A DNA stretch of 64,000 nucleotides from Paraspadella gotoi (taxonomy: Eukaryota > Animalia > Chaetognatha). The notes beneath the pieces are model-generated. The model had not been told where the DNA came from, did no database searches, and worked only from the letters and a program-made list of their open reading frames with translations. Location of the stretch: positions 8,551,008 through 8,615,007 of the forward strand of contig CM119268.1 of the NCBI GenBank assembly GCA_051294375.1. The letters are read 5' to 3'. The position numbers and the translations under genes were made by a program. Numbering within the stretch: position 1 is the stretch's first letter; each line of letters starts with the position of its first letter. Below, one piece after another: positions 9,761-63,714 of this stretch.

Positions 9761-9812
<52 letters not shown>

Positions 9813-14535: not shown

Positions 14536-14542
<7 letters not shown>

Positions 14543-14618
<76 letters not shown>
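14543..14618. repeat. (GA)n microsatellite in the SLC13/FSIP1 divergent intergenic region
   Basis: Perfect GA run seen directly; a second run lies at ~14858-14902. Confidence 0.95.
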
Positions 14619-14988: not shown

Positions 14989-17900
14989 ATGGCCGACGAC
15001 GGCGAAATTGCTGAAGTCAGAGACGACTTTTTCGACTTTGATGGTAGTGCGTCATCTTCGTCCTCGTCGACGACGCCGCGGATGACCTCGCCCAGTCTCG
15101 ACGACATCTCGCGCCCGTCAAGTCACGAAACTCGCGGGTTTCGTCAAACAAGGTGCGCCTCCAACATTTCAGCCTCCCTCGACTTTGACGCCGTCGTCAA
15201 AAAGATTCGAGGTGAGGGACCCAGTCTCAACGGCGGTTTAGTTAAACTGCCGTCGGAATTTTATTTCGACGATTTGGAGCTGGAAGAGATTTTCGACAAC
15301 GATGACGACGACAACAACAACAACAACAACGGGGAAGAAAACGCGACGACTCGAACGACGTCGACAACGGAATCCTCCGCCTCTGGCTTTGATGAAGCGG
15401 CCAACCTGGAGCGGATCTTGTCGGAAATTCGAGAGCACGATCGCGTGGTCGAGGCGCTTCTGCGCGGAGACGCGGTCGACGAAGGGTCCGCCGCTATTAA
15501 AGACGAGAGTCAGAATGGCCGAGCGATGCAGGGAGAAGAAGGAAAGGAAAGGGCGAGGATCGAAGTGAGAAGAGAATTGGAAGAGAGGACAGGAGTGAGA
15601 AGAGTTCCCGTGGAGGCCGAAGACGAAGACGAAGACGATTTGCTCAATCACTGGCACAGGTTCGTACTTCATACATACAGTGTACTTCAAGTGAGAACGT
15701 CCTACAAATTAAACACACAAAACAAAAATTAAAACAATAATAATAATAAAAATTATAATAATAAAAATAATGTAACACGGGTAATTTGAACCGACTCTCT
15801 TTTGATTTCGTCGTCGTCGTCATCGAAGGCTGCAAAGAGTGAGAGAGGACGAACTGCGTCGTACGGAAAAACCCGACGACGCAGCGGCGTCAGACCCTGA
15901 CGCCACAGCCGCGTCCCCGTCGTCGACAACGACCGGCGCAGGGGACGGAACACGTCACTCTTTACGGCCTGAAGGTGGTTTCTTAGAGGGCGAATTCCTT
16001 GATGGTGTTTCCGTCGAACATGATGCAGAAGTAGTTGACACTCCAGAAGAAGATGAAAATCTGACGGACGAACAAAAAGTCGTTCGGAGAAGAACAGCTG
16101 GCGTGGGGTGAGAAATTGTTAATACTGAAAATATTTAAGATAAATGAGAACATAAAAATATAAGGGAGTGGTCTTTTCATACAATTTAAACATTCTTTGA
16201 AAAATTTTACCACTTCATTGATATGGAAGCCAGGTACTCTGGGAGTGAATAAACGAGACTGTGAGAGAGTCTTGATTGAAAGCTTGCAGGGACCTGCTAT
16301 GTCATTATCTTGTAAGAGTGATGGATGCCTTAAATCACCAAAGCTTGTCCGAAGTCGGGGGCAAGATAGCTTATTTATTGAATGATTGGATAATTTTTAT
16401 ATTGGTTGTACCCATTTTATTTCATATCCTTTAAACTTTACATTTCTACTCGTAAAAACGAACGTCTTCAAGCTCCTCCGCTGCTTCCTCTGACGCTAGC
16501 GATCTCTCCCACGTCGACGATCCTGAACTCCGTACCGCCATCTTGAAAGTCCGCAAGCTCGATCGGGTTTTGGCGCGAAAAATCAGAAAAGAACGCAGGG
16601 TGAAGAGGGAAAGGCTTGAGCTGGTCAAGAAACTGAGGCTAGAGTTGGAGAAAATTGAGCCGAAGGGAAAAGAGGAGAAGGAGAATAAATTACAGGTAAA
16701 CGACGAATTAATGGTTGTCATCGGAGTGATTGATGTTGTAACAAGAAATAATTTTTTACTATTTAAAAAAAACATATAAATTAACAGTTTTTAGCTCTGA
16801 CGCTGCCCGAGAGTCACAGTAGAGACATTGAGGACGATTCCTGCGGTCTTTTGTCTCCCTTCACGTTCACAAATGCTGAAGACGACGACGCCGATGTACC
16901 CAACCCAATTTTCGAGACACAAATACCAGAATTCTTTTCACCACAAAGCAGAGAAATATGCAGGTCCCTGAAATATTGGCTGAATCCCTATATCATCTAA
17001 TAATAAAAACAATTTTATCTTATTCTCATGACTCGATCTCTTAAACTTTTTAAATCGTAAAACGTGATTGTTTTTTACTACCGCCTGTATTGATTGTATT
17101 GATTGCTTATCAATAATCTTTAATTTTTTGATTGATTGATTGATGACTGACTGAATGATTGAAAGATTGATTGATCGTTTGAGTGATTGATAAATTGATT
17201 GATTTATTGATTGAATAATATTTTAATCACAGATCTCGCTTAGAGTCCCTCTCTAAAACTTCCGGTCGCCGCGCCAAACCGGGAGGCGGTATCAAGGCGG
17301 GCGAAAAAAAGGGCGGCCGAAAGGCGGCGGAGGCGGCGGTCAAGAACTTCCTCCGCCGCAACAAGGAATTGGCGGGAGAAGCCGGGGAGGTCGTCCCCTT
17401 CACCGAAGAGGAGAAAAAGCGCCTGCTGGAGTTGCTCGAGGATGTGGAGATGGAGTTGCGGTTGGAGACGATAGAGGAAGAGGATGAAGCTTCGGCGGCT
17501 CAGGTTTGTGTGTTTTTATTATTACTATATTTACTAGACATTGTATTATTTTCTCTCTTTTCGTAGCTGATGAAGACTCGAATCAACAGAGTCGAAACAT
17601 GTACTATGAAAATAAAAATCGTTGTATTGGCAAACAATAAACAATTCCTAATACTATATTTACTAGGCCTTAGCAANNNNNNNNNNAAGGGTGTAACGGT
17701 GACGAGCGGGGAAGGATTTCTTCCCTCTGTAGCCGATCGACAGACTTTGGACGATATCGAAAGATCGTTGAAGAATCTCGCGCCGTTGGGACTAGAGATC
17801 GGTCAAGATCAAGGAGAGGGCCTAAAACCTTCGTCAGAGTCTGGATGCGCCTCCACTAATATCGAGTCCAATGTGAGCCAATGACATTTTTTTAGAAGAT

Positions 17901-18927: not shown

Positions 18928-30597
<11,670 letters not shown>

Positions 30598-30747: not shown

Positions 30748-32755
30748 TCAATCGCCACCGCTTTGAATTCCTATCACCATGGCGACGGCCTCCAACGTTT
30801 TCAACCTTTTAGAATTGGCCGCTGCCATGGCGTCGATCGCTCGCTTCCTTTCCGCCGCCTCCGCCGCCATCGCTTCCAGTTGAAGCCTCCAACCTTTGTT
30901 GCCTCGCTTCATGATCTTCAGTTTGCAGCGAATCTCGCGGTGGCAGTCGAGCGACATTCTCACCAGATGTCTCAAGCCGGTGAGACCGAACGAAATCGCC
31001 GTGACGTTGGAGTCTTTGGCGGCGAAATTGTGGAGCATCTGGTCGAGCAAGGCGCAGGCAGCCGGTCCGCTGACGTTGGTTGGCGTTGATGCCTTGGTCG
31101 TCGTTGCTGACGCATTGACGTCCGGACTCGTCTCTTCCGAAATTGGCGTTGGCGTCGTGACGGAAGGCAACGCCACTTCCGTTCCGTGAATCGCGAGAGT
31201 GAACGCCCTCAGGGAACTTTTGGACCTTGAGGTCTTGATCTACGTACAACGGAATTTAGGTTGAAAAATCACTGCCCAATCATATTTTATATCGAAAGGT
31301 CATTTAACCTGTAAAATCCAATTTCCCCGAGGATTTTCCCCCCAGAAATGAACTGAGAGCAATGACCACCTTTGAAATCCTTCGTTGGAACGATCTGTAG
31401 TGGACAAGAGTTTTAATAATTTTTTTTTTCACGATCCTTTCGTAGACGCTATTCAAGCAATCAATAAATTTTTCTCCCAATAAATTCCCAAGCCCAAAGC
31501 CCACAAATTGCGCCCCCCCCCAAGCTTCGCAATGACTAATGACTAATGACCATGTGGTCGTCGAAAGAGAAGAACCGACGAAGATCCTGACGGAGACTTA
31601 AGTTTGATTTCGTTGTCACCACGAATTTCCGTCGTCAATGTTATTTCCGCGATCACGTGTTCGCAGCGCGTAATTTTTCCTGCAAAATAGGATTTTCTTT
31701 CGTTTTTTTTGTATTAAAAAATAGTTTACTGGGAAGATGGGTATCTAGCTAAAGGTAGGTTCTAACTAGTCTCTCATCAGGGAAAAGAGGTAAGTAGGGT
31801 AGGGAATATATTGGTAATAGGTAAGTAACTATAACAAAGGGAACAAGGGTACATAAAAGGGAGAGAAGGGAGAGGGAAGGTTTGCAGACCCCGAGACCGA
31901 GAGGAGAAGTTGAGAGAGTGACTCCGGGGATGAAGAGAAGGGGACGACGAGGGGAGGAGGAGGCGTTGAGAGGGGGAAGAGAAGGCCCGGGGGAGAGAGA
32001 GGTTCTGGCGGTAAGGTGAGCCTCTATTTTGGTTTATTTTTTCGCCTAACCGAAATGAAAAAAAAAAGATATTGTTGAAAGTAAAATGTACCTGAATTGA
32101 CGTTTATCACGACTTCATAAGGTTCGTTTTCATCGAAAGTGTTGTTCGAGGTTAGTTTAGTTACCCATTTCTCCACATGAGATTCAGAAACGCTCTCCCA
32201 CGACAGCGCGGCAGTTACTAACGAGTCCGCATCGAGAAGGCCGAAGCCAAACCTCAACGAGATCGAAATATAAATGAATGCTGTAATAATTAATGAATTT
32301 TATTATAATTGTAAACATTAACATTCACAATGAAAAAGCTGTGAAAAACAGAAAACAGAAACATTTTTTTTTTTGGTTGCAAATATTAATTTTTTGCACA
32401 GCTTACTACCATCTGCAATGGTTGTATCCCACTTCCATAATCCATATAGTACAATTAAATCTCTCTTCAAACTTTGTTCTAAGTACAATTAATAATAAAT
32501 TATGAATTAAACGGCATTCCCAAATCCGAACCTTCTTAGTTATTTCAATAAATCCAAGTCATTTCTTACCAATTGGAAAATCGTTTCCCAGCCCCATTCG
32601 TTTGCCATTCGTCTTTGGGGTCACGAAGAGCATCAGATCTCGAGGTCTCCACAATGAGATGCTGGAGGTCGCGCCAGGTCAAGGAAGAATTGGCCTCTAA
32701 CACCAACGCGAAAATGCCTGTGTGATTGGTAAATATGCGTTTGTGTGTGAGTGAG

Positions 32756-32791
<36 letters not shown>

Positions 32792-32818
32792 TTCTTTCTT
32801 TCTTTCTTTCTTTCTTTC

Positions 32819-32875
<57 letters not shown>

Positions 32876-32876
32876 T

Positions 32877-32924
<48 letters not shown>

Positions 32925-35890
32925 CTCCCTGCCTCCCTCCCTCTATATTCTCTCTTTCTCTCGCCTGCTGCGATGGCGCAGCGGCTGAATGATCCAGTGT
33001 GGCTTCCCGCATCGACCTCGAATGTCCGGGCAGACGATAGAGTCGTCGAAAGCGAAGACTGAGGATGAGTAAGTGACGGCCATGATGGCGGAACACGGCT
33101 CTGCGTACCTGATCGATGGATACGAACTTGAATTGAAATAATACGACGAAAAATTACTTATAAATATTATGTAAATACATGTAAATAAATTATACGTAAG
33201 TATTTACTTTTTAATTCTTTAACAATCACTGTACACTTTATCCGTCCTTCACTTTGGCATTTGACATTTTCTATTTTGTATCTCTCTCTCTTTCTCTCTC
33301 TTTCTTCGTACCTCTTTCGCTCTCTCTCTCTTACAACAAACAACTAATTAGAAAGTTGGGTCAACGAATTCTGAACACCAGAGCAACAGTTCTTATCAAC
33401 AAGTCCTTCACTCCGTCCTCCAAACCAACCATGGTATCCGACCGCGCTTTGTGGCGGCAGAGATGGCGACGGTGAAGGGCGAATTGACGTAACCGTCGCA
33501 GGCGCACGTGTCAGACCGTTGCCCGCCGTTACCCGACGCCCAGACGAAGACGGAGCCACGCCCACCGCGTCCGTGATTGACGCCGTGAAGGAGGGCGCTG
33601 GAAAGGAACGCGGAAAAATGGTCGGTCAGTCGGGCGAAAAGCTGGTTGTCGTTTTATATTTTTTTGTTTTTATTTGTTTTGTAAAATTTAATAATCAAAA
33701 TCATTTTAATTAGTAGTTCACACTGTACTCACTACAGTAAGTAACAGTAAACGACACATAATCATCATCATCATCATCGTCATCATCATCATCATCATAA
33801 TCATCAATCCCTCAATTCTCGCGACTTCGTCAATCGTCACCCTTCCGCCAAAGGTCCCGGTCCTTCGACGTCGTCGCCGTAATCTCCGGGTCCCCAAGCG
33901 AGAGAGTAAATGTCCACGTAATCTCGTTTGAAAGAGAGAGAGGCCGCCTCGAGGGCGTCCGTTACGTTTGCGTCCAGCATTCTGGGGAAAGAAATGGGCT
34001 TAAAAAGATACAATAAGTTGTTGTAATTGTGAATCGATTAATGATTATGAATAAACTGAAGAAGTTCCCCAACTAAGAATCAACCCTCTTGCTACGTGGC
34101 AACCGGACACGAGCTTTGGTCTCGAGACCTTTGGACTGAACTGGCGAATGTTGTACATATAGCATACGGTAAATTTTTTCTTCTCTGTCTGCTTTTTTAA
34201 AACTTTGAATATGCACGACGTCAAAAATTCCCTTTCTTAAATCCCGAAACATTTAAAAAAAAGAAAAGAAAATGGTACTTTCATAATTTATACACATACT
34301 ACAATACAATACTACAAAATGCACGGAACTTTGTTTTCCCCCGAATTTCGTTCCTTCTCGACCCGCTCCCCCTCCCCTTCTCTCCCCCCTCCATTTCTAC
34401 GCCTGATAATCTCCATCGACGATTCCCACCTGATCCCGGCCGTGAGCGACGCCCACGCCGCAGAAGCTGTTGTTCTGCGCTGCTGCGACGATTCCGGCGC
34501 TGCGGGTGCCGTGTCTGCCGGACGAAGAAAATATTCGATAAGATGAATTATGAGAAATTACAAATAAATACAAATATTAATAGTATTAATAGCTAATTAA
34601 TAAAAAAAATGATAACAATAAAATGATAACGAAAGTTTTGATTAACGAGGTTTAATCGATTTAATCTTACATATTTAGTACTGTCATCGCGCGCGTACGA
34701 TCTCTCTTTACATTACATTTCCAGTCACTTCAAAAATATTTGACGACTGACCGACCGACAGACCGGTTGTCGTCCATGAGGTTGTATCTTGGATACGGAT
34801 CGTCGTCGTTATCGATGAAATCCCAAGATGCGTCGGCGTCAAAGTTGTGGATCAGCTCGGGGTGGTCGGATTCGAGCCCGTCGTCGACGACTGCCACCAC
34901 CACGTTGGCGCCGGTGTAGCCTGTCATAGTGGAGAGTGAATGGAAAATGTTCCCCTTTGTTTTCTCGATTCATGACGTAGAACAGCGTGGTCAACCCACA
35001 CCTCTTCTCCACACCCTCTCCACATTCATGGTGACATTTTCGATGTCGTCGTTGAGATACCACATGCGCCTCCACTTGGGGTCGTTGTACGTCGCGCCAT
35101 CTCCCGCTCCGCGTTTGTGCCTGTTTGGAGAGACAAGAAAACTACGGTAAGTTTCTCGAAAGAATATTAAATAATTTTAAGAAAAGAAAGAAAATAAAAC
35201 GTGTATGTATGATCAATTCGAATAAAATGAATCAAGTCAATCAATCAGGTCAATCAACTCAATCAAATCAAATTTAAATCAATTCAAATCAAATCAGTCA
35301 TTTGAAAAATAGTCAAACTCTCTGAACAGAACCTGACGTGGGGAATCTGCGGTAAGACTTTTTCGACGACGCATTTAGGAGACGACGACGACGACGACGA
35401 CGACGACGATTCCAACTCCTTCACTTCCTCCATCGAAATTGGTCGGAACGTTAGGCCTCCGCTCGGTTCATCGATGTTCTTTTGTTGTCGCATTTTTCGA
35501 AATCTAAAGAATCCTTCGCCAAGGGCGACCCTGGCGGCGAGGCCGTGAAACTGGGAAAATTCATCTACGCAGCTGGCTTCGCAAGAAGGCTAAATCGTAG
35601 GGATTCGAGGGGAAGCGTTTGATGGAATGGATAACTGTCTAATTGAACGTTATACTACTAAATATTAGTGTTAGGCAAAGTCGAAAACGGTTTGTGTCAA
35701 ACTCAAAGGAAGGAAGGAACATAAAAATCCCGCACAAAATAAGTTCATTGTTTCATAGGCCTACATATTAAGCAGAAAGACACCATACCTTAAATTTGAT
35801 GACCACTTCCGGAAATGTGATTTCCGACATCGCTAACCCAATCCCAAAAATTGAAAGCGACCAAAATCGAAAAAAATTCATTCGATCCAT
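30748..35890 (-). CDS. Furin/kexin-type (S8B) proprotein convertase, copy 1: signal peptide, prodomain, RHKR site, catalytic domain, P-domain, soluble C-terminal tail; apparent frameshifts in two exons
   Basis: Exon 35789-35890 [20 protein letters not shown]; RHKR|G..DPKW..MWYLN; VAVVDDG (Asp); HGTRSAG (His); WASGNGG (oxyanion Asn); HTGSS-like Ser region; LTWRDLQH; FGFGLLDA; CEHV..RGD..LKSPSG; [13 protein letters not shown]. Exons 34430-34514 and 32965-33108 are out of phase by small indels (error or decay). Confidence 0.85.
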
Positions 35891-39112: not shown

Positions 39113-39373
39113 NNNNNNNNNNNNNNNNNNNNNNNNNNNNNNNNNNNNNNNNNNNNNNNNNNNNNNNNNNNNNNNNNNNNNNNNNNNNNNNNNNNNNNNN
39201 NNNNNNNNNNNNNNNNNNNNNNNNNNNNNNNNNNNNNNNNNNNNNNNNNNNNNNNNNNNNNNNNNNNNNNNNNNNNNNNNNNNNNNNNNNNNNNNNNNNN
39301 NNNNNNNNNNNNNNNNNNNNNNNNNNNNNNNNNNNNNNNNNNNNNNNNNNNNNNNNNNNNNNNNNNNNNNNNN
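39113..39373. other. Assembly gap (largest of six; others 17677-17686, 40218-40227, 46369-46393, 53608-53617, 57024-57048)
   Basis: N runs seen directly. Confidence 1.
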
Positions 39374-40177: not shown

Positions 40178-40444
40178 TTTTTCAGTTCTTCTTGAGATGT
40201 AAAAAAAAATTGTAGAANNNNNNNNNNACTCTGACGAATAATGTCTTATTATTAATTAATTATTAATTATTAATGATTTTAAAAGTTACAAATTTTTTTA
40301 TAAATCTCTTTGGCCGGCTGTCCGTATAAAAAAGTGGTAAGTCGCCTCAGTTTTTCAGTTCTTCTTGAGATGTAAAAAAAATTGTAGAAGGCAGCATGCA
40401 GACATACTCCTCAAAAGAGCAGGAGATGGCACTCAGAATCATCG

Positions 40445-45600: not shown

Positions 45601-48600
45601 TCATGATCCAACGCCAAGTTCTTCGTCGTCGTCGTCGTAATTTAAAATTTCGCAATAGTCATGAAGAAGGAGCTCCTGGATCGTCGTCCTCGAACGACCC
45701 TCTCTTGTTAATAACCGCGACTTTTTCGCCGGCCATCCAGACTCCGTCTTTCGTATGGCCGTCCGGCTGACCAAGTTCCCACGATATTTCCTCGGTTTCG
45801 GGAGACCCGCGCCAGTGCCAACAGCATGGGTAGTCATCCCACTGCACGGCGCCCGTCCAGAATTGGGGTCGTCCTCGTAGCCGACGCGAGAGAGATAGTC
45901 GCCGGCTTCTTTGAGGAGACTCTGACGAATAATGTCTTATTATTAATTAATTATTAATTATTAATGATTTTAAAAGTTACAATTTTTTTTATAAATCTCT
46001 TTGGCCGGCTGTCCGTATAAAAAAGTGGTAAGTCGCCTCAGTTTTTCAGTTCTTCTTGAGATGTAAAAAAAATTGTAGAAGGCAGCATGCAGACATACTC
46101 CTCAAAGACTGTTTTCTTTTACGTTTCCTCGTGTCATTCGCAACATTTGCAGCTATTTGCTTCAGCTAATTTTAAATATAATTATTTACTATAATAACGC
46201 GGAGTTTTTCATCACTGTCGAAGACCGCCACGCGACTTTTTGCTCCTGCTGACCTCAACTCGCAGAACTTTTCGGCAACGTAATAAGACCTTTCGACCTG
46301 CAAAAATGCGAATCAACATTTTAGAAACCAGTTTAAACCAGTTTAAACCAGTTTAAATCACTGGTTCANNNNNNNNNNNNNNNNNNNNNNNNNCAACTTT
46401 TCGTCCTTGGTAAAATAATGACAACATCTCACCGAAATGAAGGCTGAAGCTCGAACCTTCCACGTCGACGTTAAAATTTCTCTCCAACGTCGGACGTTCA
46501 CAAACAAAAGGGAATTCTCGGCTTCGGGCCTCGTCTTCGATGAGGCCCGATTCCACGTCGAGCACCGCGGCGGCGTCGTCGATAATTCGCCTCGGGAACG
46601 TGACGTCAAAATTTGCCTTCTTTGACGAGGCGGAGAGTGGAGCGGAGTGGAGAAGTAAGTCGTCGGGTTCGCCGGGAGACCAGGGGCTGATAGTATCGCT
46701 GGGTCCGAACTGAACCCACTTGTTCCACGGTTTTTTCAACCTTCGCAACCCCGTCCAAATTCTGCGAGCTTTCGATCCAGATTTCAACACGGTCTCTTTC
46801 AACGCTTTCGATGCGGGTTCCGTGGCCGTGCTCGCCAGTTGCGCTCCTTCTCTCGCGCAAGCGTCCAACGCTTGGTACCAAATGAGAGCTTCCGAGTGGA
46901 AGACGCGCGTTAACGTGTCCTCCAGCGACGTTGCTCTTCTGAACTCCACAAAGAGACTCCAGTTGGTTTCAAAGCAGTTGTTGAGTTCATGACATTGGGT
47001 CCCGTTCAAATACTCGGTGCAGTAGCCGAAGCACCGTGCCTTGTCCTCGCACGTCGGCAATCGGCGGATACCGAAGAAGAGCCGATGGCCGAGAAGGCGG
47101 GAATTGTTGTGAGATGCAGCGGATAAGGCGAGTTCTTCGACGCCCTTTCCTCCCGAGCAGGTAGGTTCCCAGGGTCCGTAGGGGGTAGGGGCGGAAAGAG
47201 CGAAGCCGGTGCTGCATCCTGAGCTTAGGACGAGAGAAGGATTCATCGATGACGAAGACGATGATGAGGACAAAGATTCGTTAGACAATTTGCAAAAAAA
47301 TGTAAACTCTGCATTTAGAAAATTGAAGGCTTGCATTGCGCCGTCACTAGAAAGGAGTAGGGCCTTGGATATTCCATCGATGACGTCTTCTCCGGCTGCT
47401 TGCTTGATTGCATCAAACTCTGAAAGAGGAAATGAACCAAGGACCTACAAAGTTTTTTGAATCTCTGTAATAATGTCCGTTTATCTATGATCTGTTATAG
47501 AGTCTGCCGAGATTTTCTGTGTTCAGTAATCACGACTTGACCAAACTTCCGTGCCGTTACCTTATTACCTGTTTCGTCTTCATCTCCGGCCACAACGCCT
47601 CCGCACTTTAATCCCTCGCAACAGACGCCCAGCCACGCCCACTGCTCCTTCACGTCTGTCAACGTCGCCGCCATTGCATCCCTCTCTGCCTTGGCCGACC
47701 CAGTAGCAAGAACTCCTCCATTGGCCAGGCAAAATTGATGCGCCTCCAACCAAGTGAGCGCGTCGCCGTGATAGTAATAGGAAACGTTTTCATAAACTCC
47801 GGCAACGGAACTAACGTAAAGCGTGTTGGCATTCTCGTAACATTCGTCGGACAGAGCAACGCCCAGTCCATATTGCCAGCAGTCGTTGATTCGATTTTCT
47901 TCGCCGTCGCAAACGGGCTGCAACAGGGAATTGGCTTCTAAGAATCTAGCGTTTCCAACTAGCAAAGCGTCCGTTTGCCGCTTTAACAGCTTCTTGGAGA
48001 CAATTCGACCCAACCAGGTGATTTGAGACACGTTTCTATTAAAGACGCAAATGGACCCGCGTGGACTGTGGTCAGTTTTAGCTACGAGGGGAAAACCACG
48101 GTCCGTATAGCAGTCCGAATGGAATTCCAGGTAGTAGTCTGGCTCAGGGTTCTCCACTGGTACGATAATGAAGGGGATGAGAATGATTAGGATGATGGGG
48201 ACGACAAAGAGAAGCCAGAGCGCGGAGGCAGGAGTCGGTTCGGTATTGATAGGATGATTTACACATTTGATACAAGAATCTATTTTTGCATCTTCATCCT
48301 TCTCAGACGTTCCGTCTGATGTTGTTCCATCTCCTTCTTTCTCCTCAGCTTCACTTTCATTTGCAGCATTTCTTCTGTCTACGCATTCAACCCTCAAATC
48401 ATAAGGCCTCTTTTCCCACAGGCTCGTCAAGAGTTTAAAGAGGCGACACTCGAACTCCTCCTTAAAGAGCAAGAAGCCGACGACGGCGTTGAAGACGGCG
48501 ACCAGGATCGTAGTCACGAATGTCCACAAGCTGTTGTTGTTGTTGAGGGACTTGAAGAATTCGACCGGAAGCTTGGCCCCGCGAATGTTGACGTCGGCAA

Positions 48601-50474
48601 TAAAGAAGCTGATGATGATGACGAAGACGATGACTTTGGAGACGAGGAAGACGACGCAAGCGCCTCGGCGGAAGATGGATTTGTGGCGGACCTAGGGGTG
48701 TAAGGAAGTATATTGACCATAAGCTTTTAGGGCTTTTATATTGTAGTGTGAAGTCGTACTGGCAAGTCTATAAAGTTATTTTTGTAAATGTCATTATCTT
48801 GTAAGAGTGATGGAGGCCTTAAACCCCCAAAGCCTGTCCAAAGTCAGGGGCAAGATAGCTTATTTATTAAATGAATGGATAATTTTTATATTGGTTGTAC
48901 CAATTTCATAAGAAACCGATTTGACTAGTTTTTAGTTGTGTCATAATATAATATAGACTTTTTACAAACTGCAGTGGAAATAAAAGTCATTTTATTTCTG
49001 TTCATGACTTACCAAAAAAAAAAAAACAACTCCATAAGACAAAAATCAAAACTCACCAAATCTACGAGGACGACGAGAGTAACGAAGAAGGCGGGCGGCA
49101 GGACGAAGACGGCGATCGTCGGCAACCGTCCAGTCGGAGCGTAAATGGCGCAGGAGAATCGACAAATCCCGCCGAGGACGACGACTTCGGAAATGAGGAA
49201 GACAACGATGACCAATCTGGTGATCCATGCCGGGCGGTCGGGAGAATCAAAACGGCCGTGGACCGAGTCGTTTTCGTCGTCGCCGCCGTTGGAGTCCTTG
49301 GACGCGCATTCTTTATCGCTTCCGTCGCCATCGCTTCCGTCGCCATCGCTAACGTCGCCGCTCGTTTTCGGTTTCTTGGAATATTTTATTGAGCAAAGTT
49401 ATTTTGGTGTTTTATATTTATTTTTCATTAGGTTTTTTTTTTTATATCAATATGTAACGCGCGTAGAAAACGCTTAAAAAATAAAGTTTTGTTTCATATT
49501 CTTACTTGTGAAATATTGAGAGCATCGCCGGAGTCGTCGCCGCCGCCTCCGCCGGAGTCGCTTACGAGGATAAATTCCGTCAAACCGTGACACAGAGTGA
49601 CGGCGGAGGAACAAACGGAAATCATTTGAGCAAAGGAGAGAGAACGAACGCCTTCTTGTCCCTTGGCGCTGGTCATAATTAGCTGAGAAGTTTTAAAGCA
49701 ATGAAATTTGAATTGGATAAAAGAAATCAAGAAGACAAAAGGGATGAACACCGAACATTAAACAGGAGTGTCAGCAGTTTACGAATTTAGTTATCCCTTG
49801 TTAAAACCTGTGTGCAGAACTGCGGAAGACTCTCCGCGAAAATCTCAGCCAATTTTGCAGAGGAGGCGAACCCGGCGGCGGCGCTGACGAGACCCGTCAC
49901 ATCTTCCGGCCGATGACGATTTTGAATCAACGTGAAGAGACAGAAGAAGTAGATCACCGTGGGACCGAGCATAATCGCCGATCCCACTAGCGCCGCCACC
50001 AACCACGGCGTGGGAATGACCTTCTTGGCGCGACCGCGACGTAACATGTGCCAGGCGAGCAGGAGGAATTGCCCGGCCCCACCGGAAACGATCCATAGCC
50101 ACGTGAGAAAGAGGTGAATTGCGTTGTAGTCGGGAGGAAAGGAGAGCCAAACGCGAGGCGACAGCACGTAGTCAAACATCCGACCTACAAAACAACAGGT
50201 AAAATTTTAAGTTCCGACGAAGTCATGGCGGGTGCTGAGTCGTCTCCAAATCTCTCTCGTGGAATGACGATCTCAGAACCAGTGAGATTCTGAAAAAATT
50301 GTCATAATTTATATTTAAAATTAAATCGTGAAATTCACATTCACTTCTCTCACCGATTGGAGTCTCGTAAGGAAAAGCCTGAGGAATCTGTTCGCGCGCG
50401 ACGAGAATATCAACGCCCACGTCCCAGAAGTAGGACGCGATCAAAATGACAAACCGAATCAGTGAGACCCACAT
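45601..50474 (-). CDS. XK-related (Xkr/CED-8-like) multi-pass membrane protein fused to an extra TM helix and at least 3 C-type lectin domains
   Basis: Exons 50354-50474, 49808-50184, 49506-49682, 49057-49374, 47569-48691, 47419-~46400, ~46190-46277, ~45920-45601. XK motifs SYFWDVGVDI, KLAEIFAESLPQF, QMISVCSSAVTL. CTLD motifs LTWLEAHQFCLANGGVLAT..WLG..FFCK; LIWYQALDACAREGAQLAS..WTGL..WSPGEPD..FVCE; SYYVAEKFC..FWTG..WELGQPD..ICE. The first six exons join in phase. The junction across gap 46369-46393 and the true stop are uncertain. Confidence 0.78.
48788..48912. repeat. Repeat family B, copy 3 (left-truncated), in an XK-lectin intron
   Basis: Matches the right-hand ~125 bp of 39917-40177. Confidence 0.85.
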
Positions 50475-50813: not shown

Positions 50814-50861
<48 letters not shown>

Positions 50862-51710
50862 CTTCTCTCGCACACTCACACACACACTCAGTAATAATTA
50901 TGACTCAACAAAAAAACAATAGAAACTAGACACTATTTGTTACTTACACTCTCAGCCCTCCCATCAATGATGCCAATAAGTGACGAGGTAGCGAAAGAAA
51001 CAAATGAGGGGAAAAGTCGTAATCTCCTATCAATTTTCTGAAACCTGACTCTAATGTCGATTCTAAATTTAAAAAAAAAGTTTAAGATTACAGCAGAAAA
51101 AATATATTTAATACCATGCGGCTTAACAAAATAATTCAAACAATTCTTCGAGCTCTAACAACACTATAGTTTGAACGGAATTTGTATATACACGTGATAA
51201 AGAGCCGAATTTTACATTCGCCGACTGGAACCTGGGTTTTTTTTTCTATTATTTTCCCTGCAATGTCGGAGGGTAGACTTTAAGACTTTATATCAAGATG
51301 AAGGCGTTGGTGGATTTGAAATGACTGGGCGGTCACAGGTTAGGGTAAAGGGTAAGGATATGGATAATTGGGAATAGGGTTTTAAAAGGCCTAGTTGGCG
51401 AAAGTAAAATTTTCCTTATTGAACAATTCCTGAAATCAATGTAAACATAAACTGTAAATATATTTTCATCCGTTGACTTCGACGGCGTAATAATAATACT
51501 ATTGAGCAATTCGTTAAAAAATAAAAACTTAATAATCGGAGACTGAGTTGCCTTTATTTATGATTAAAAAAACAAACAAAAAAAAACAAAAAAACAAACG
51601 AAACAGCCAAGTGCCCTTTGCCATGCCCGAAAAATACATTCGGGCAGAATGGAAACGAAAGTCAACATAACACAATAACTAATTTGACGAATCCCTTTTA
51701 ACGTAACTAG

Positions 51711-54700
51711 TTAAGGCTGCTCGTCGTCGTAGTCGTCCTCTTTTCTTACTCCACAGATTTTCAACGTCAATTTTACGTCAAAAACTTTTTTCCCCCGGAA
51801 CGTCTCGATTGTCAATAAAGGCTCTTCAATACGGAGGCGCCCTACTTCCACCCACACTTTATTTTTCCGTTGGATGTATGACGTCAAATACAAGATTCGA
51901 CGACGACGACGACGACGATCGGTGCAGATGTGACGGTAGGTGCCCGGACATGTCATGCCGACTGACTCGCGACTTTGTTCGTGCCGTATTGAAGGTTTAT
52001 GAATTCCCTGTCGGCCACTTCAGTGAGAGAGCTATGGGCGGTGGCGGAGAGAATTCGGTTTGTGGGGGAGGGGTGGGGGGGGGGGGGAGGAGAGGTTGGG
52101 GTGGGGGGGGTTGGGGGGGAGGGTTGGGTTGTAGACCGGGGGAGAGGGGGATTAAGTTTTGTCTTTATTTGGATTTTTTTTAGAATTAATTTAACAAGAA
52201 CGGTAATTCCAATGTGTGGCGCCGCAGTGACTGCCTTAACACGTGTATTTTTTCCCAACATGACATGATAAGACATGAAGTGACGTGACTTGACATGATT
52301 ACACGACGACGATAACTTTCTTAGCCCATGTATTGAGTTTTAGGATTTCCTGAAGGCGGTCACTTAAATTTGAGGATTTTCCCTTCATAACAAATGGGCA
52401 TTGAGCAACCAACTATATGCAAGTTTTGAGCATTTTTAACGTAAGTGGGATAGACCGATGGACAGACATAACGACGGACCGACCGACCGACCGAAAAGTG
52501 ACTTACAGAGTTGCTCCGCGAGTACTCGCGGCTCAACTAAAAATAGACTGGGTCGGCTAAGGAATGACGGAGACATCGAGGTCTGGAGGGACAGAAAAAT
52601 TCATTAAAAATCATCCGCCTTTTTTCATTAATTTTTTTTTCATGTTTTTTTTTTTTCCGGGAGGAGAAAATTGATGGAAAGATATAAACGAGAAATTCTC
52701 GGTCCATTCTCGACTTTTCTTTCTAGATTCCGAGTTCGACAAGCTCAACGTGGGGGCGAAGAAGAACGATTTATAATTATATATATAAACAGTTCCGAAT
52801 GTGTCGAGATCAGACTTCCAGCGGGGAGTTTGTACTGTGTATTTTGTATAATGTATATGTCGTTTTTCTTCGACTTTTGTTTACCGTCTCATTTCGAGTC
52901 TGCTAATGTTTGTAAGACGCTCTTTACGAGAAGACTTTCAGACTTTCACTTTTGACTTGAATATCGATAATTTTAAGAGCCTTTTTGACATTTTGTCGTC
53001 GCCGCGTTTATTCTAGTTATAGTTCCCAGTTTCTTCATTCGAATCAACCCATTTTTTTTTCTTAAAAAATTAGTTATCCTTCCTAATAAGAAAACTAACC
53101 ACTGACTAATAGTTCAAATTTAGAAACTTCTGGTAAAACAGAGAAAAAGCCATGCGCCTGCTAAAAAAAAACCGCGTTTATTCGATTCACTCGCGAAATA
53201 AATCACGAGTGAATCGTGTGAAAGGTTTTCACCCCTTAACTTAAGGCTTAAGTCACTTCTTTTTTAAGCAAAGTTACAAGCCAGATCTCTGCCTCCAACC
53301 ACATATTTTCCCCACAACCCACCCACCCAACTATATCTCCACTCAACTCTTTACCTCGTCAGAGAAGTTGCGTTCGTTCCTCGTCGCCATCTTGACGCCG
53401 ATTCGTCGTTGCCATGGATACGACGGCTTGGTCTGAGCCACCGCGCCCAAAGCGTGGATGCAATTTACCACCTTGGAATACAAGAAAAGAAAATAAAGGG
53501 TGTTAATTCTTTTATTTATACTTTAATTTTTACAACGAAAGTCCATGAAAAGGTCACATTTAAATCCCTTTTATGAAAATGAATTAAACTCAAATACATA
53601 CAGTATCNNNNNNNNNNACGACGACAATGACGATCATGATGATGACCACAGGAAGGAGGGAGGAAGAAGAAGAGGATCGAAGATCCTTTTGGCGGAGCAG
53701 TTTGATGTGAGTAAAAAATTGATATTTTAAAGTCCAAAAAAAGAAATTGAAACTAGGATAATGATTTTATATAAAATATCTTGAATATTTGTTTCTACAG
53801 CATCTACATAATGACAATCGCGAGCGTGGTGGGGGCATTAGGCGTCGTCGTAGGCGTCGGCGTTGTCTTTAGGCGCCAACTACGGCGCCTTGTAGAACAC
53901 GTGCGGCGACGGCGAGGAGGAAGACGAGAAATTGGTGTTTTCGTAGTAGAGGGAGAGGGAGAAGAAAGAAGAGGGAGGGGGGTGAGATTGGGAGAGTGGG
54001 TGAGAGAAGTGAGAGGAGGCGAGGAGAGTGAAAGGGAGGGAGATGGAGAAGGAGAAGAGGAAGAAGAAGAAGAAACTGTATTTGACAGAAGAATTATGTA
54101 TAATACCATGTAAATAGTTTTTGTAATTTTTTTTTTTAGCTAGGGTTAGTTAGTTTTTCATTGTTATAATTGTATTTTATATTAAATATCAAAAGAATTA
54201 ACTTCTTTTTTTAATTCTTCTACTATTTCAGAAGAAGGATTCACAACCGTTTCACAAATGGATAATTCTGATGAATGAATTAAAGAGAAAAGGGATACAT
54301 TGATGTACAAATGTAAATAATAAATTGTAAAAAATGATATATTATTTTTAATCCACAGACAATAGGGCGCTAGACAATCAGTCAAACAAAAAGTTAAAAA
54401 CAACTAGACAACTATTATTTACCTCGATCGCGGAACAAAAAGTTTATTTTTCGAGTAGTCTCAAGATCTGATTTTCGAATTACAAAGAATTCAAAAGATT
54501 TCAACTTCAAATAAAACTGCCTTCTCTAAAGATAAATGAGACTTATTTGATATCATCTGAATCTACTCTTCAAGCTGAACAACTTCGTCAATTCAAATCA
54601 GCGCCACAAATTCCCTATGACGATCTACGCTCATTAATATCGCCAATGTGTTTGTATTGCGAGACTACTCTTTCCCGGTCTCCGTCAAGTTGTAAACAAA

Positions 54701-57700
54701 CTGCGATCAGGCCTAAGTCAGCTAAACAATCGGCTAAACAAAAAAAGATAAGAACAACAGTTTAACTGAATCAGTTCCACTGAAATCAAAACGCAGCTGG
54801 CGGTTTTACAGAGTGATAATTGTCGTTACGTCAGCATTCTTTCTGGCAATCTTGATAAGGTGATAAGTTTTTTTCGATTTCGAGTGCCGCGAATCTTTAT
54901 CAAGATGGCCAGAAGGTGTAATAGTATATCTCTGTCTTCGTGCGTCGATCGTCGTCGTTGTCGTGTCGTCTTCATGGAGGTGCACCGCCCGATAAAATAT
55001 AACGTCCGGAGAAGTTATACTTTGCGTCAGACTTTATGATAATATGGCTCGAATCAATGTTATAATTTTTTTATATTAATTGAAGTGACGTCGTAGTCCA
55101 AAAAAAAAGCAATTTTAAGCAAGCCAAAAGTTAACCACTCCTGAGATTATACATTAACTCTCTCTCACGACTGGGCTCACAACAACTAAGACCCAGAATA
55201 AGACGACATGCCTCTCCCACCGACTCTCTGTGAGCTCCTTGCCACTCCCCCGGAATCTCGTCATTCGACGTCCATGTATGGAAAAATCTCGCCAGCAAAA
55301 GGAGCGTTCTCACCGAACTTCCGTCGCCGGGATTAAGTATCTCATGATAAAAATGTTTCCGGCGGAAATCGAAACGGGGAGAATGACATTTGGGAATCCG
55401 AACGGGAAAGAATGTGAATGAATGCGAAAGCTGAACTGCGTGAGATGTCATGAAGCGAAATGAAAGTACATAGGAAGAGGACCAAACGATATGGAGAGGA
55501 CATTTGGTGAATGATGAATTGATTAAGTAAATATGTAATGATAAGTGTTAATGACAGAACCGTTCAATATATAAGCAGTTCCTGAGCTTCGGATCAGGTG
55601 TAACACCTAGTTACAGGCGGGTTAAGCGCCCCGTCCCTCTAACTGCTCGGCGGCCACCGGGCTAGAACCCCGATCTTGGGGTTGGGAGGCGAATGACTTG
55701 CCTCCGGCACCAGATGGCCGCTGAATGGAAGTGTTGGTGGATTTTAGTCCACCAAATTTAGTATGTAAAAAATTTTAATTTAAATTATTAAAACAACAAA
55801 GACAAGCTGAGAAATAGACAGTCAAGTAAAGGACGAATAAATTATTTACAAAAAAAGCCAGTGAAGGAATAAACAGATGTAATGACTATATACTGCATGT
55901 ATCAATATACACACTAACTCGATGAATTTTTAAATAAGAAAGATGTCAATGCATATTGTCTGCGAGAATATTAACTCATTGAGTAACAAATACAGTACTA
56001 ATTCGTAATGTGCTTTTGAATATATAAAGTACTGAGATATATGACTTTAGAGATTTGATAGGTCCGGGGATCAGCTCAATTCAAATTATAATTAGGGTCT
56101 AAAACCAAGCTCGGATTTCGAAAGAGAGCTCCTGACGATTCCGAAAATGTATTCACTTTACTATTTCTTTCAAAGCGTCCATTCGTTTTTTGATTTTTTT
56201 TGTACTATATAAAATAAAAAAAACCTATTTGAAAGAGTTGTCAGACCAAAACGGTAAGGCGTTTCTCATGAAATTTGGCATGAATTATCTTTGAGGTCAC
56301 GGACTCCAATTCTATGAAAGATACTTTCAAAATTTGCCTTCCTTCATAGAAAATTTTATTATTTATCAATTAATTTTGGCATTAATTCCTTAAATATCTT
56401 TGAAACGAAAAAAGTTTTCCAAAAAAGCGCTCATAGAATCTTCCCCACCTTTCCTTTCTTGCCCAAGATATTTTTTTCTTCAGAAAGAGTCCACACGGTT
56501 TGGCTGCAACTCTTCGTATGTTTCAACTTCTCTTTTCGTCAATGAAAGTTAAATTCTCGTACTCATTACTCATGCAAGATTCACCACAACATTACACAAA
56601 CTACGGGAATGTGATGATGGAGTTTGTTCAACGCCGATGTCTTAAAAAAACGGCTTACTGTTTTTAATTGTTCTTAATCCAGGTTTTATGGTGGACTAAA
56701 ACCACCAACCGTTCATCAGCGGCCATTGGTGCTGCGAGGCAAGTCATTCGCCTCCCAACCCAAAGGTCCGGGTTCTAGCCCGGTGGTCGTCTGGCAGTTT
56801 AAGAGGGACGGGGCGCTTAAAACCCGCCTGTAACATGGTGTTACAGCCTGATCCGAAGCTCAGGGACTGCTTAATTGAACGGTTCTTCACGTAACTCATA
56901 ACAATAATTACTGTCTCTTCAGTATTGATTTTTTTTTTCAGAGATTCGCCTTAGAAAAACTAGACGAGGGAGTCAACTATGTAAAATCATTTACATAAAG
57001 TAAAAAGTTCAAATTGAAATAAANNNNNNNNNNNNNNNNNNNNNNNNNACGGTTTTATTAAAGTTGGAATTAAGATGTTTTTCTGTATTTTTTAAGGTTT
57101 TGAAGGGTTATATTTCATAATATAGTAGTCGTATTTAAAAAAAAATTATATAGTTTGTAGCACCGAGGACAGTTGGTTGGCATAATTACTATTTTTTAAA
57201 AAACATTTGTTCAAAAAAATGCATATTTTGATATTTTGTTGAAAATTAATTTTGGATTAAAGAATAACAAATATTCTATTTTATGCATTGTATGTTATTG
57301 GTGTATCAGTTAGCTATTTTTTGAAATAAATTTTTTTAAATTATCATAAGACCGAATATACAATATTATAAAAAAATATATTGCTACTGTATGCAAATGA
57401 GTTTTAACAAAGCTGTATTTGATCATTTTGTTTTACCACTGATTTAGGCAACCCCTCCCGGTTATATCACCATAATATAAGAGTATTTACTACCATATAT
57501 TTTTTACAGTATGCAAATTAATTTTTGTCCAAAAAAATGCCCCTGCACTATTTTTTTTCAAAGTGGCTCAAACTCTTATGGGGATAAAACCACCCTAAGG
57601 TCTAACCCGTATTCGATTTTCAGCTGATTTCCAGCATTTACAAAAAAGTTACAGCCTCCCTGGACTTTTCCAGGTTCTTCAAAACCGATACTGTATGACA

Positions 57701-61300: not shown

Positions 61301-62894
61301 AAATTAATGAAATAATTAATTAATCGATTAATTAATTAGTTAATTAATTTTTGTAGGCAGATGCGACATTGTTTGCTCAAATTTGTTTAGAAATTTACCC
61401 TCTCAGAAAAATTTTTACAACATTATTATAAAAAAAATTTTATAACCCGATTGTTCCTTGTTTTGATTATATTTTTTTTGTATTACCCTAGATTGAAGTC
61501 CCTGTATTTAAGTGATTGCTTAAACTGGAACCAACTATTTCACAACGAGCCCATTATCTCCTTTCTTTTTTAATTTTAGGTGATGCAGAAGCTAGTGTCG
61601 TTTGCCCTCCCTTCGCTTTTATACTCCATAATGTTGATGATGTCGTCCTTTGTCATCATGTTCTACATAGACTGGCATCTCGCGAGCGTCTTTTGGGGAG
61701 CATTTCCCCTTGCGATAATCCTCTTTGTTTGGGAGACCAAATCAATTAAGAAGAAGAAAATGGTTTATCAGGTGAGGGTTGGAGAGTTTGGATATTTCTC
61801 TTGATAAATCTTATTTTCTTTATCTCCCGCACTCACCTAGTAAATCATCCTCAATTCCATCTCTATTCCTCTTCTATTCCTCTGATCTCCCCTGATCAGG
61901 GATGTGGAGCCGACCTAATTTTTTTTTGGGTCCAGCTCCGGTTCCGGCAAAAAAGCTCGGCTCCGGCGGCTCCAGCTCCGGGTCCGGCTCCACATCCCTG
62001 ATCAGGGGAGATCAGAGGAATAGAGATGGAATTGAGGATGATTTACTACGTGAGTGCGGGAGAGTATGAATGATAAAGAAAATAAGATTTATCAAGAGAA
62101 ATAAAAAAGAGAAAGATTTATTAGGTAAAAAATTATCAACAAGATTGCTTAAATGTATATTTGTTATTAATGCCATCTTTCCCCCATTTCACATTTCCCT
62201 TTTATTTTATTTTTTTTCACCACCAACTTAACAATTACAGCCACCTCTTCTTCCCCACAACCCGTTAAAAACTTCAGGAGCTTCTCGCGCAAGCCGGAGC
62301 CATGATCTCGGAGACGGTCACTCAGATCCGCACGGTGCGGGCCTTCGCGGCCGAGTCCCGCACGCAGAAGGCCTTTCATGCGATTTTGCAGATTGCCTAT
62401 GAGGACGGCCTCAAGCTCATCTTCATTCGCGCTGGGTTCGACGCCCTCGAGACCTTCCTCTTCAACATCTGCTACGCTGGATTCTTTATCCTCGCTGTCT
62501 TCATGATTATCTGGGGCAAAATCAAAATGGATAATGTACTTGTCTTGCTCATTTACGTCACGCAGGTGGAAAGGGCGGACCTGGTGGTCCGTCTTCGGGC
62601 GTCTTTCGTATCGTGTAGATCCGAATCATGAACGCCTCTTTCTCCAGGTTATCGCCGGCTCGGTCGAGTTGATGATGGGAGTAGCGCATGTGGCCGAAGC
62701 TACGGGTGCTTCCACGCGGACCTTCGACATCCTACAAACGCGACACGAAGACATCGTCGACAAGGCCCGATTTCGCCGGATGCTCAAGATCACGAACCCA
62801 TCGTTGGAGCACTCGGCCAAGGATTTTGACGGCTCCATCGTTTTTGACAACGTCTGCTTCTCCTACGGGAGATCGCCTCGGAATGTGTTGACCG
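58306..62894 (+). CDS. ABCB-type half-transporter (TAP/ABCB9/ABCB10-like), TMD and start of NBD; continues beyond the window
   Basis: Exons 58306-58384, 58635-59173, 61580-61771, 62278-62565, 62648-62894 join in phase. Motifs GERFLRRLR..F..LLQQPISFFD..SGELVNRVASDT, ISETVTQIRTVRAF, GSIVFDNVCFSY. Walker A is not in the window. Confidence 0.88.
59901..60132. repeat. Foldback/MITE-like element, 62-bp arms with one mismatch and 108-bp spacer
   Basis: 59901-59962 is the reverse complement of 60071-60132. Confidence 0.85.
60225..61230. repeat. (GTCC)n microsatellite followed by about 5 degenerate tandem units of ~130-200 bp
   Basis: Recurring GAAATTTTGTG..GGGTAGGAA..GAGTGGAAATGAGTTTAAATGGAAAAAA near 60357, 60493, 60797, 60976, 61128. 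Confidence 0.8.
61796..62100. mobile_element. 104-bp CAGGG-ended MITE (61897-62000) inside ~100-bp inverted flanks
   Basis: TIR CAGGGATGTGGAGCCG / CGGCTCCACATCCCTG; the flanks are inverted, not direct. Another left end occurs at 63000-63040. Confidence 0.8.
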
Positions 62895-63714
62895 GTGATT
62901 CCGAGCCGTTGGTTGGGGGGAGGTGATTGATGTTGTTGATGATGTAAGTCTTCTGCATCATCATCTTAGTCCTTGTCGGCTGCGAGTAGTTGTTGGTTCC
63001 AGGGATGTGGAGCCGGAGTCGGAGCTGGAGCCGGAGCTGAAATATATAAATCTGAAATTTTTTTTCTGTAATAAAAACCTAAATCATTTATATATCAAAA
63101 TTTTATATTGATTGGTTTTGATTTGACTTGGCACTGAGCGGAGAAAAGTTGCCTTCAAAATTGAGTTTAATTTTAAAACTCTATTTTTTTTTTTAAATCT
63201 GTTTGTCTAACTTTTTAACTATTTTTTTACAAAACTTTATATAAAAAGGTATCAATATTAATATCTTCTGAAAGCTCTTAAAAAGATTGGCATAATTAAA
63301 AATACTGTAATTTTAAAATTAGCCTATCTTACTTTAAGATAATTATTAAATTAAAAATTCTTAAAGAGCAGTTTTTGAATAATTATTAAATTATTGTTAG
63401 CTGTTTTAATTTAGTTTTTTTATGCTTTTTTATGATACCTATATAAACAATAATTGGTAAGATCATTATAGTAAAAAAAGGTCAGATATTTAAAAAAAAA
63501 TATTTTAGGATTTTATTATTTTAATTTAGATTATTTTGATTAAACTAAAGCTGGTTAAGCTTATTTTCAAGTTACAATATTCTTAAATATATCATTTTCT
63601 TCAAATTTTCAAGAGCTTTCAGAAGATATTAATATTAATACCTTTTTATATAAAAGTTCTTATTTGGAAAAAAAACAAAAATTTGTTATTTGATAACAAT
63701 GATTTTGTTTTTTT

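Follow-up and report, generated by a model that had tools for sequence, protein, structure and literature searches.

A 64,000-nt stretch of Paraspadella gotoi DNA, which is eukaryotic genomic sequence from a draft assembly and is referred to here as the window (all coordinates are window positions), carries on its minus strand a predicted intact gene for a multi-pass surface protein of ∼1034 aa that belongs to a divergent XK-related clade. The chain is ordered as follows: an eight-helix XK-type membrane core, a short cytosolic helix with an acidic linker, a ninth transmembrane (TM) helix (TM9), two units that each consist of a scavenger receptor cysteine-rich (SRCR)-like module and a C-type lectin-like domain (CTLD), and a broken CTLD-like tail. 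This is a conserved XK-family architecture that is apparently undescribed, although its novelty is provisional.

One exon joins the XK-type core to the head

The gene starts with an ATG at 50474, and six exons joined between 50474 and 46433 yield 1034 aa without a stop codon. All six have GT-AG borders and compatible phases (Table 1). The core and the head meet within exon 5, and a preliminary description of this DNA, made from the sequence and its open reading frames (ORFs), had reported that this 1123-nt exon runs without a stop from XK-like helices through a linker and an additional TM helix into the first CTLD. We confirmed this arrangement. Exon 5 encodes, in order, TM7, TM8, the 81-aa acidic linker, TM9, the Cys-rich SRCR-like module 1, and the start of CTLD1; its open frame spans 398 codons (48691–47498) when the in-frame extension into the next intron is included, and it is collinear with single ORFs of related proteins.

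The linker begins with a conserved helix that follows TM8 (RLFKLLTSLWE, 48445–48413) and continues as a variable acidic stretch (20 D/E and 11 K/R). Two long acidic low-complexity insertions of the window protein were missing from its relatives in the family alignment. In the acidic loop between TM helices, a 15-nt unit repeated three times in tandem (49315–49359, aa ∼230–245) encodes GDGSD units. As the loop is missing from all relatives, it is probably a recent low-complexity expansion.

The N-terminal half has an XK-type fold and a conserved charged track

Sequence evidence for XK membership is marginal yet specific, and the fold evidence is clearer. The Pfam XK-related profile (PF09815; curated gathering cut-off of 24.8 bits) matched aa 68–203 of the window protein with 24.2 bits (E = 2e-5), and two relatives with the same fusion (P0002 and P0007) scored above the cut-off (27.3 and 30.7 bits, respectively). 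The best match of a 16-sequence family profile in the whole PDB was XKR9 (7p14_A, E = 0.0058), with XKR8 aligning on the same ExxxESxPQ helix. For aa 1–518, an AlphaFold model had a mean predicted local distance difference test (pLDDT) score of 71.5 and a predicted template modeling score (pTM) of 0.67. The top three Foldseek matches of this core model in the PDB were human XKR4 (9boj), rat XKR9 (7p14_A), and human XKR8 (8xej_X), with a probability of 1.00, target-normalized template modeling scores (TMt) of 0.51–0.54, and 422–435 aligned columns; the match ranked after them had an E of 1.8 and a probability of 0.06. The XK fold consists of eight membrane-spanning helices and two re-entrant hairpins, and the model agrees with this fold. 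As judged from profiles and model together, the resemblance to XK proteins is beyond chance.

The three XK/Xkr8 motifs that had been pointed out earlier in the N-terminal exons were all present (D18-V-G-V-D22, E154-IFA-E158-SLPQ162, and Q185-MIS188-VCS-S192), and they were also conserved in the relatives. Scrambling by Xkr8 requires D26, D30, R/K134, E137, E141, and R183 (PMC8500837). We found counterparts for five of these six residues, namely, D18, D22, K151, E154, and E158. The last three align onto Xkr8 R134, E137, and E141 in the 16-sequence profile alignment, and D18 and D22 are spaced as in the D-x-G-x-D motif of helix 1. A 21-sequence family alignment had 19 informative rows for the charged helix: the K151 position was K or R in 18, E154 was E in 17, and E158, P161, and Q162 were kept in all 19. 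S188 was invariant in all 21 sequences. We infer a scramblase-like activity from these conserved residues, and the conservation of the charged track suggests that the core has retained lipid scrambling or lipid handling.

A free cytosolic C-terminal tail regulated by caspase or kinase, a trait of the Xkr4/8/9 subgroup, marks the apoptotic subgroup and not the XK family as a whole. The window protein has no such tail, and its chain runs on from TM8 through the linker into TM9.

TM9 is predicted to place a head of SRCR-like modules and CTLDs outside the cell

The termini of XK-family proteins are cytosolic, and one extra helix would therefore bring the C-terminal region to the outside of the cell. 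Several features fit this predicted topology. Summed over 15 family members, there are 51 K/R in the 15 residues before TM9, versus 20 in the 15 residues after it; an NNS sequon in the TM7–TM8 loop is conserved across the family; and SRCR and CTLD are extracellular domain types. The extracellular position that the preliminary description had assigned to the CTLDs on account of the extra helix is thus in agreement with what we predict for the whole head.

The first domain of the head is the 115-aa SRCR-like module between TM9 and CTLD1. The Pfam SRCR profile (PF00530) matched four of 22 aligned relatives (best E = 2.9e-6) and gave no match to the window module itself. The modeled module (pLDDT 86–96, except for a first block of ten residues at 66) matched CD163 (9nb6_C) with a Foldseek E of 1.5e-3. 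It holds five Cys, compared with six to eight in classical SRCR domains. CTLD1 was modeled with a pLDDT of ∼87–95 over most of its length and below 50 in one loop of ∼30 residues. Foldseek matched it to the carbohydrate-recognition domains of collectin-11 and langerin (probability 1.00), and a PDB profile search gave weak CTLD matches.

CTLD2 scored 41.1 bits against Pfam Lectin_C (PF00059, E = 3e-10, cut-off 22.6), and its nearest PDB sequence matches were CTLDs of the mannose-receptor family. The assignment as CTLD is carried by the profile for CTLD2 and by the fold for CTLD1. A comparison of the two halves of the ectodomain (aa 765–1020 vs. aa 509–754) gave a BLASTP E of 2e-8 over 175 columns. 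Because the second half repeats the first, the predicted head is two copies of an SRCR-like module followed by a CTLD. What had been described as a tandem C-type lectin ectodomain does contain CTLDs, but that description missed the SRCR-like modules that alternate with them. It had also anticipated an XK-related match plus at least three Lectin_C matches; of these, the XK match came out just short of its cut-off, Lectin_C was recognized at CTLD2, and no match was obtained for a third domain.

We could not retain the proposal that the protein is a glycan sensor. No EPN, QPD, or WND motif was found in CTLD1; CTLD2 has EPD at the EPN position and IED at the WND position, and it lacks both Cys of the second disulfide. 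The combination expected of a Ca2+/sugar site (EPN or QPD together with WND) thus occurs in neither domain. Since CTLD2 reads IED at WND and is without its second disulfide, Ca2+-dependent sugar binding cannot be inferred, and these predicted CTLDs are present without being demonstrable carbohydrate-recognition domains.

The fusion is conserved in environmental sequences

The family was revealed when 1.84 billion cluster representatives were searched exhaustively with HMMER; this returned 85 proteins at E ≤ 1e-3 and 20 at E ≤ 1e-30. Searches with sub-profiles identified 22 ORFs (∼15 clusters at 50% identity) in which an XK core and an SRCR-like module share one frame, most of them also with a CTLD-like tail. 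Identity of the relatives to the window protein was 29%–36%. All are genomic contigs and not cDNA. On a Tara scaffold (L002), a helix-1 exon (YFWDIGFDILVAREQ) lies ∼1.2 kb upstream of the main ORF and has a phase-1 donor at a position identical to that in the window, and the remainder, from TM2 to the CTLD, is one exon. Because the ORFs of the relatives carry the same junction and this scaffold has the same phase-1 intron, the predicted single-chain fusion is conserved and is not an artifact of gene prediction. The single-chain union of an XK protein with lectin-containing domains proposed in the preliminary description is thereby upheld.

Out of 30 related proteins that we looked up, all 30 were from ENA, JGI, or Logan assemblies; none had an informative name, and none came from an annotated genome. 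Where the sample was visible, the source was a Tara Oceans marine metagenome. Neither of two scans of JGI metagenome contigs gave a relative. Word-indexed searches with the full protein and with a 15-sequence alignment returned a single sequence (P0001); low-complexity words (poly-Ser, GDGSD) probably swamped their list of 8000 candidates. Two distinct members, P0008 (872 aa) and P0011 (760 aa), were observed on two contigs (L005 and L006) of one sample (ERZ27286572), each with an extra Cys-rich C-terminal extension past the CTLD. The family may be multi-copy in one organism.

We found no published description of an XK-related protein with a CTLD or SRCR domain in one chain, InterPro architectures being outside this search, and to this extent the earlier remark holds that XK proteins with lectin domains are not known. 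The family is seemingly missing from annotated proteomes, which points to a blind spot in catalogs of domain architecture.

A built-in glycoprotein partner is the favored reading

We favor, with moderate confidence, a reading in which the XK core still handles lipids and TM9 with the head forms a built-in glycoprotein partner in cis. The core, which keeps the charged track, would probably still move or handle phospholipids. TM9 and the glycoprotein head would probably fill in cis the role of the separate single-pass partners of other XK proteins (basigin/neuroplastin and Kell), that is, folding, surface delivery, and stabilization, and the head would add a binding surface of the scavenger-receptor type. 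Precedents for such partners are Xkr8–basigin (PMC8500837) and XK–Kell (PMC10243564). The C-terminal tail of XKR8 works as a plug (PMC10938166). Because their position matches that of this plug, the helix after TM8 and the linker are a likely control point; the helix, being tethered to TM9, would be the obvious candidate to link the head with the core. The ligand of the head would more likely be a protein or a polyanion than a Ca2+-bound sugar.

Several observations weigh against this reading. The gene and its relatives are known from genomic DNA alone. The XK-related score of the window protein is 0.6 bits under the cut-off, and neither a two-sequence profile nor the N-terminal 208 aa alone retrieved an XK protein from the PDB. 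The mapping of D18 and D22 to Xkr8 D26 and D30 is based on the motif and the fold match, without a residue alignment, and we looked for an equivalent of R183 in the window protein and did not identify one. The flanks of TM9 in the window protein are themselves without K/R, and the orientation is taken from the relatives. No conserved caspase site (DxxD) was seen in the linker in the family alignment. Toward its 3′ end, the gene is either disrupted or wrongly assembled (see below). Finally, not all XK-family members scramble alone, and XK was originally not credited with scrambling (PMC10243564).

A possible but doubtful alternative is that the protein is a scavenger- or lectin-type receptor, whose main function is ligand capture or endocytosis by the SRCR/CTLD head and whose XK-like core does not scramble and serves as a multi-pass anchor or as a dock for partners in the cytosol (e.g., a bulk lipid-transfer protein; compare XK–VPS13A). 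The head does resemble type II class A scavenger receptors and the CTLDs of mannose-receptor type, and the XK similarity is weak in sequence. Moreover, scramblase activity has been demonstrated for some XK-family members only, and XK acts with VPS13A (PMC10243564). On the other hand, few features of the family are as well conserved as the acidic/basic track of Xkr8 scrambling, and a mere anchor would not need eight helices kept across ∼15 clusters.

A bolder reading is a self-contained, ligand-gated scramblase, in which a microbial, apoptotic-cell, or gamete ligand on the head would act through TM9 on the helix after TM8 and lead to phosphatidylserine exposure without caspase cleavage. We think this unlikely. 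If true, it would make the family a natural "Rosetta-stone" fusion, which would show a general requirement of XK cores for a single-pass glycoprotein as partner.

A broken or misassembled 3′ end

Downstream from exon 6, the gene could not be continued in frame. The phase-1 end of exon 6 does not fit the single plausible acceptor (46297), which needs phase 0. Within exon 8, the lectin-like reading changes frame twice (the first time at a CCCC run), and reading QPD requires a frame shifted relative to both ends of the exon. A conceptual join had no Lectin_C match, no lectin match in the PDB (phmmer), and no BLASTP similarity to CTLD2. Of two further CTLDs reported earlier, one with EPD and one with QPD, the first is therefore CTLD2 as established above, and the second is frame-broken and escapes recognition by profiles.

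A gene for a furin-like proprotein convertase lies downstream (∼43050–41700, minus strand, with further pieces to 32566–33096). It has at least four frame jumps in ∼600 coding nt, and one or more of these occur at a C run. Near 43000, for instance, the reading jumps at a CCCC run (YNDP|QWRRMWFLN), and another jump lies near 42740 (DFIDNDD|DPYPRYN). The former is similar to the first of the two frameshifts in exon 8 of the XK-lectin gene. The furin-like gene either contains assembly indel errors or is a pseudogene. Because this neighbor also jumps frame, local assembly indels are as likely as real decay at the 3′ end of the XK-lectin gene.

These defects raise the question of whether the window copy is a decaying or unexpressed member of the family, a pseudogene in progress, with the architecture being real in its relatives. 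Its final ∼430 coding nt contain one phase mismatch and two frameshifts, its two long acidic insertions are absent from the relatives, and even the closest relative is only 29%–36% identical to it. However, neither stops nor frameshifts interrupt the six exons, which together hold 3.1 kb of coding sequence with canonical splice sites and conserved motifs, and the broken part adjoins an assembly gap in a region where the frame jumps of the furin-like neighbor suggest local assembly indels. We regard a decaying or unexpressed window copy as improbable. That the gene model has seemingly fused an XK-like gene to an adjoining type II lectin or scavenger-receptor gene is very unlikely and largely ruled out: although the model derives from genomic DNA alone and runs through a low-complexity linker with little conservation, a single exon spans the junction in an open frame of 398 codons, no stop codon occurs between TM8 and TM9, and the same junction is uninterrupted in 22 independent ORFs from other organisms.

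Features of the XK-lectin gene and other contents of the window

Table 1. Parts of the predicted XK-lectin gene and assembly gaps in the window
Feature	Coordinates	Strand	Description
XK-type membrane core	48461–50474	−	aa 1–408, exons 1–5; eight TM helices and re-entrant hairpins
Exon 1	50354–50474	−	aa 1–40, phase-1 end; start codon and TM1 with D18-V-G-V-D22 (50423–50409)
Exon 2	49808–50184	−	aa 41–166; TM2, re-entrant hairpin aa 99–128, helix with K151, E154, E158, PQ161–162 (EIFAESLPQ at 49846–49820)
Exon 3	49506–49682	−	aa 167–225; Q185/S188/S192 helix and beginning of acidic low-complexity loop
Exon 4	49057–49374	−	aa 226–331; remainder of acidic loop, TM5 (SE288..GGxCR297FS), TM6
Exon 5	47569–48691	−	aa 332–705, 1123 nt, one ORF; TM7 to first part of CTLD1
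Exon 6	46433–47419	−	GT-AG borders; ends in phase 1
Cytosolic linker	48218–48460	−	aa 409–489; conserved post-TM8 helix, then variable acidic stretch
TM9	48161–48217	−	aa 490–508, WLLFVVPIILIILIPFIIV; hydropathy 3.2; predicted inside to outside
SRCR-like module 1	47801–48142	−	aa 515–628, directly after TM9
CTLD1	47280–47800	−	aa 629–752; interrupted by intron 47568–47420
SRCR-like module 2, degenerate	46941–47225	−	aa 771–865; after Ser-rich spacer (poly-Ser)
CTLD2	46482–46940	−	aa 866–1018; EPD at 46670–46662
CTLD3-like remnant	45601–46297	−	Exon 7, 46297–46189; exon 8, 45921–45601
Assembly gap	46369–46393		25 N, inside intron downstream of exon 6
N runs (scaffold gaps)	17677–17686, 39113–39373, 40218–40227, 46369–46393, 53608–53617, 57024–57048		Six in the window

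Within the 64-kb window we found no paralogs of the gene, and no tRNA or Rfam family. Exons of an SLC13-type Na+/dicarboxylate-sulfate transporter were observed at 11492–12187 and 13422–13910 (minus strand). Their best named relatives were vertebrate SLC13A5 (45%–48% identity), and sequences from metagenome, Logan, and MERC data reached 61%–74%. Because these identities are higher in the environmental sets, the source lineage seems to be present in environmental data but not in annotated proteomes. The gene content (XK, SRCR, CTLD, furin-like convertase, and SLC13A5-like transporter) points to an animal.

An exon-sized ORF at 62534–62926 (plus strand) was judged by eye to be like the nucleotide-binding region of an ABCB-type transporter. 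A dispersed inverted repeat (5268–5553 and 27840–27573, 82% identity over 289 nt), with similar short ORFs (..DVRRCEYT..) at both sites, may be a mobile element or resemble a short interspersed nuclear element. (GA/CT)n microsatellites were unusually frequent (9766–9809, 14536–14617, 27955–28016, 28943–29045, 32807–32918, and 50815–50869), and one of them lies ∼340 nt upstream of the XK-lectin start codon.

Comparison with known systems

The predicted core fold matches those of Xkr8 (as in Xkr8–basigin/neuroplastin), XKR9, and XKR4, and like Xkr8 the protein has the acidic pair of helix 1 and the K/E/E track on the ExxxESxPQ helix. As in Xkr8–basigin, an XK core is paired with a single-pass glycoprotein that bears extracellular domains. 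The partner, however, is fused covalently at the C terminus and passes from inside to outside, whereas basigin is a separate type I protein, and its domains are SRCR-like and CTLD instead of Ig. Unlike Xkr8, the protein has no free C-terminal tail and no recognizable caspase site, and its sequence similarity to the family is marginal (24.2 vs. 24.8 bits).

Kell is a type II protein, and the orientation of the fusion is the one expected if a Kell-like partner had joined the cytosolic C terminus of XK. The fusion is also like XK–Kell of red cells in that an XK-family core is covalently joined to a single-pass glycoprotein with a large ectodomain (PMC10243564). It differs in that the link in XK–Kell is a disulfide between two gene products, and the Kell ectodomain has an M13 metalloprotease fold in place of SRCR or CTLD modules.

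The type II class A scavenger receptors SCARA5, MARCO, and MSR1 have a C-terminal SRCR domain, and COLEC12 has a C-terminal CTLD. TM9 with the head is like these proteins in making a single pass with the N-terminal side in and the C-terminal side out, and in carrying SRCR-like and CTLD modules. It is unlike them in having no collagenous or coiled-coil stalk, in the divergence of its SRCR-like modules, and in that an eight-helix XK core takes the place of a short cytosolic tail. Among invertebrate members of the XK family, CED-8 of Caenorhabditis elegans lacks both an extra TM helix and an ectodomain, and a caspase activates it by cleavage near the N terminus. CED-8 is linked to phosphatidylserine exposure (cited in PMC10243564).

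One account (PMC10243564) leaves open why XK proteins need partners and whether an undiscovered partner of XK exists in brain and muscle. That an XK core has been joined in nature to a single-pass glycoprotein head, and that this fusion is conserved, is independent evolutionary evidence that the pairing matters, and it offers a single-gene system for learning how lipid scrambling is controlled by a partner helix and by a tethered segment in the cytosol. The fusion would also add to the known modes of membrane attachment of SRCR and CTLD recognition modules in invertebrates.

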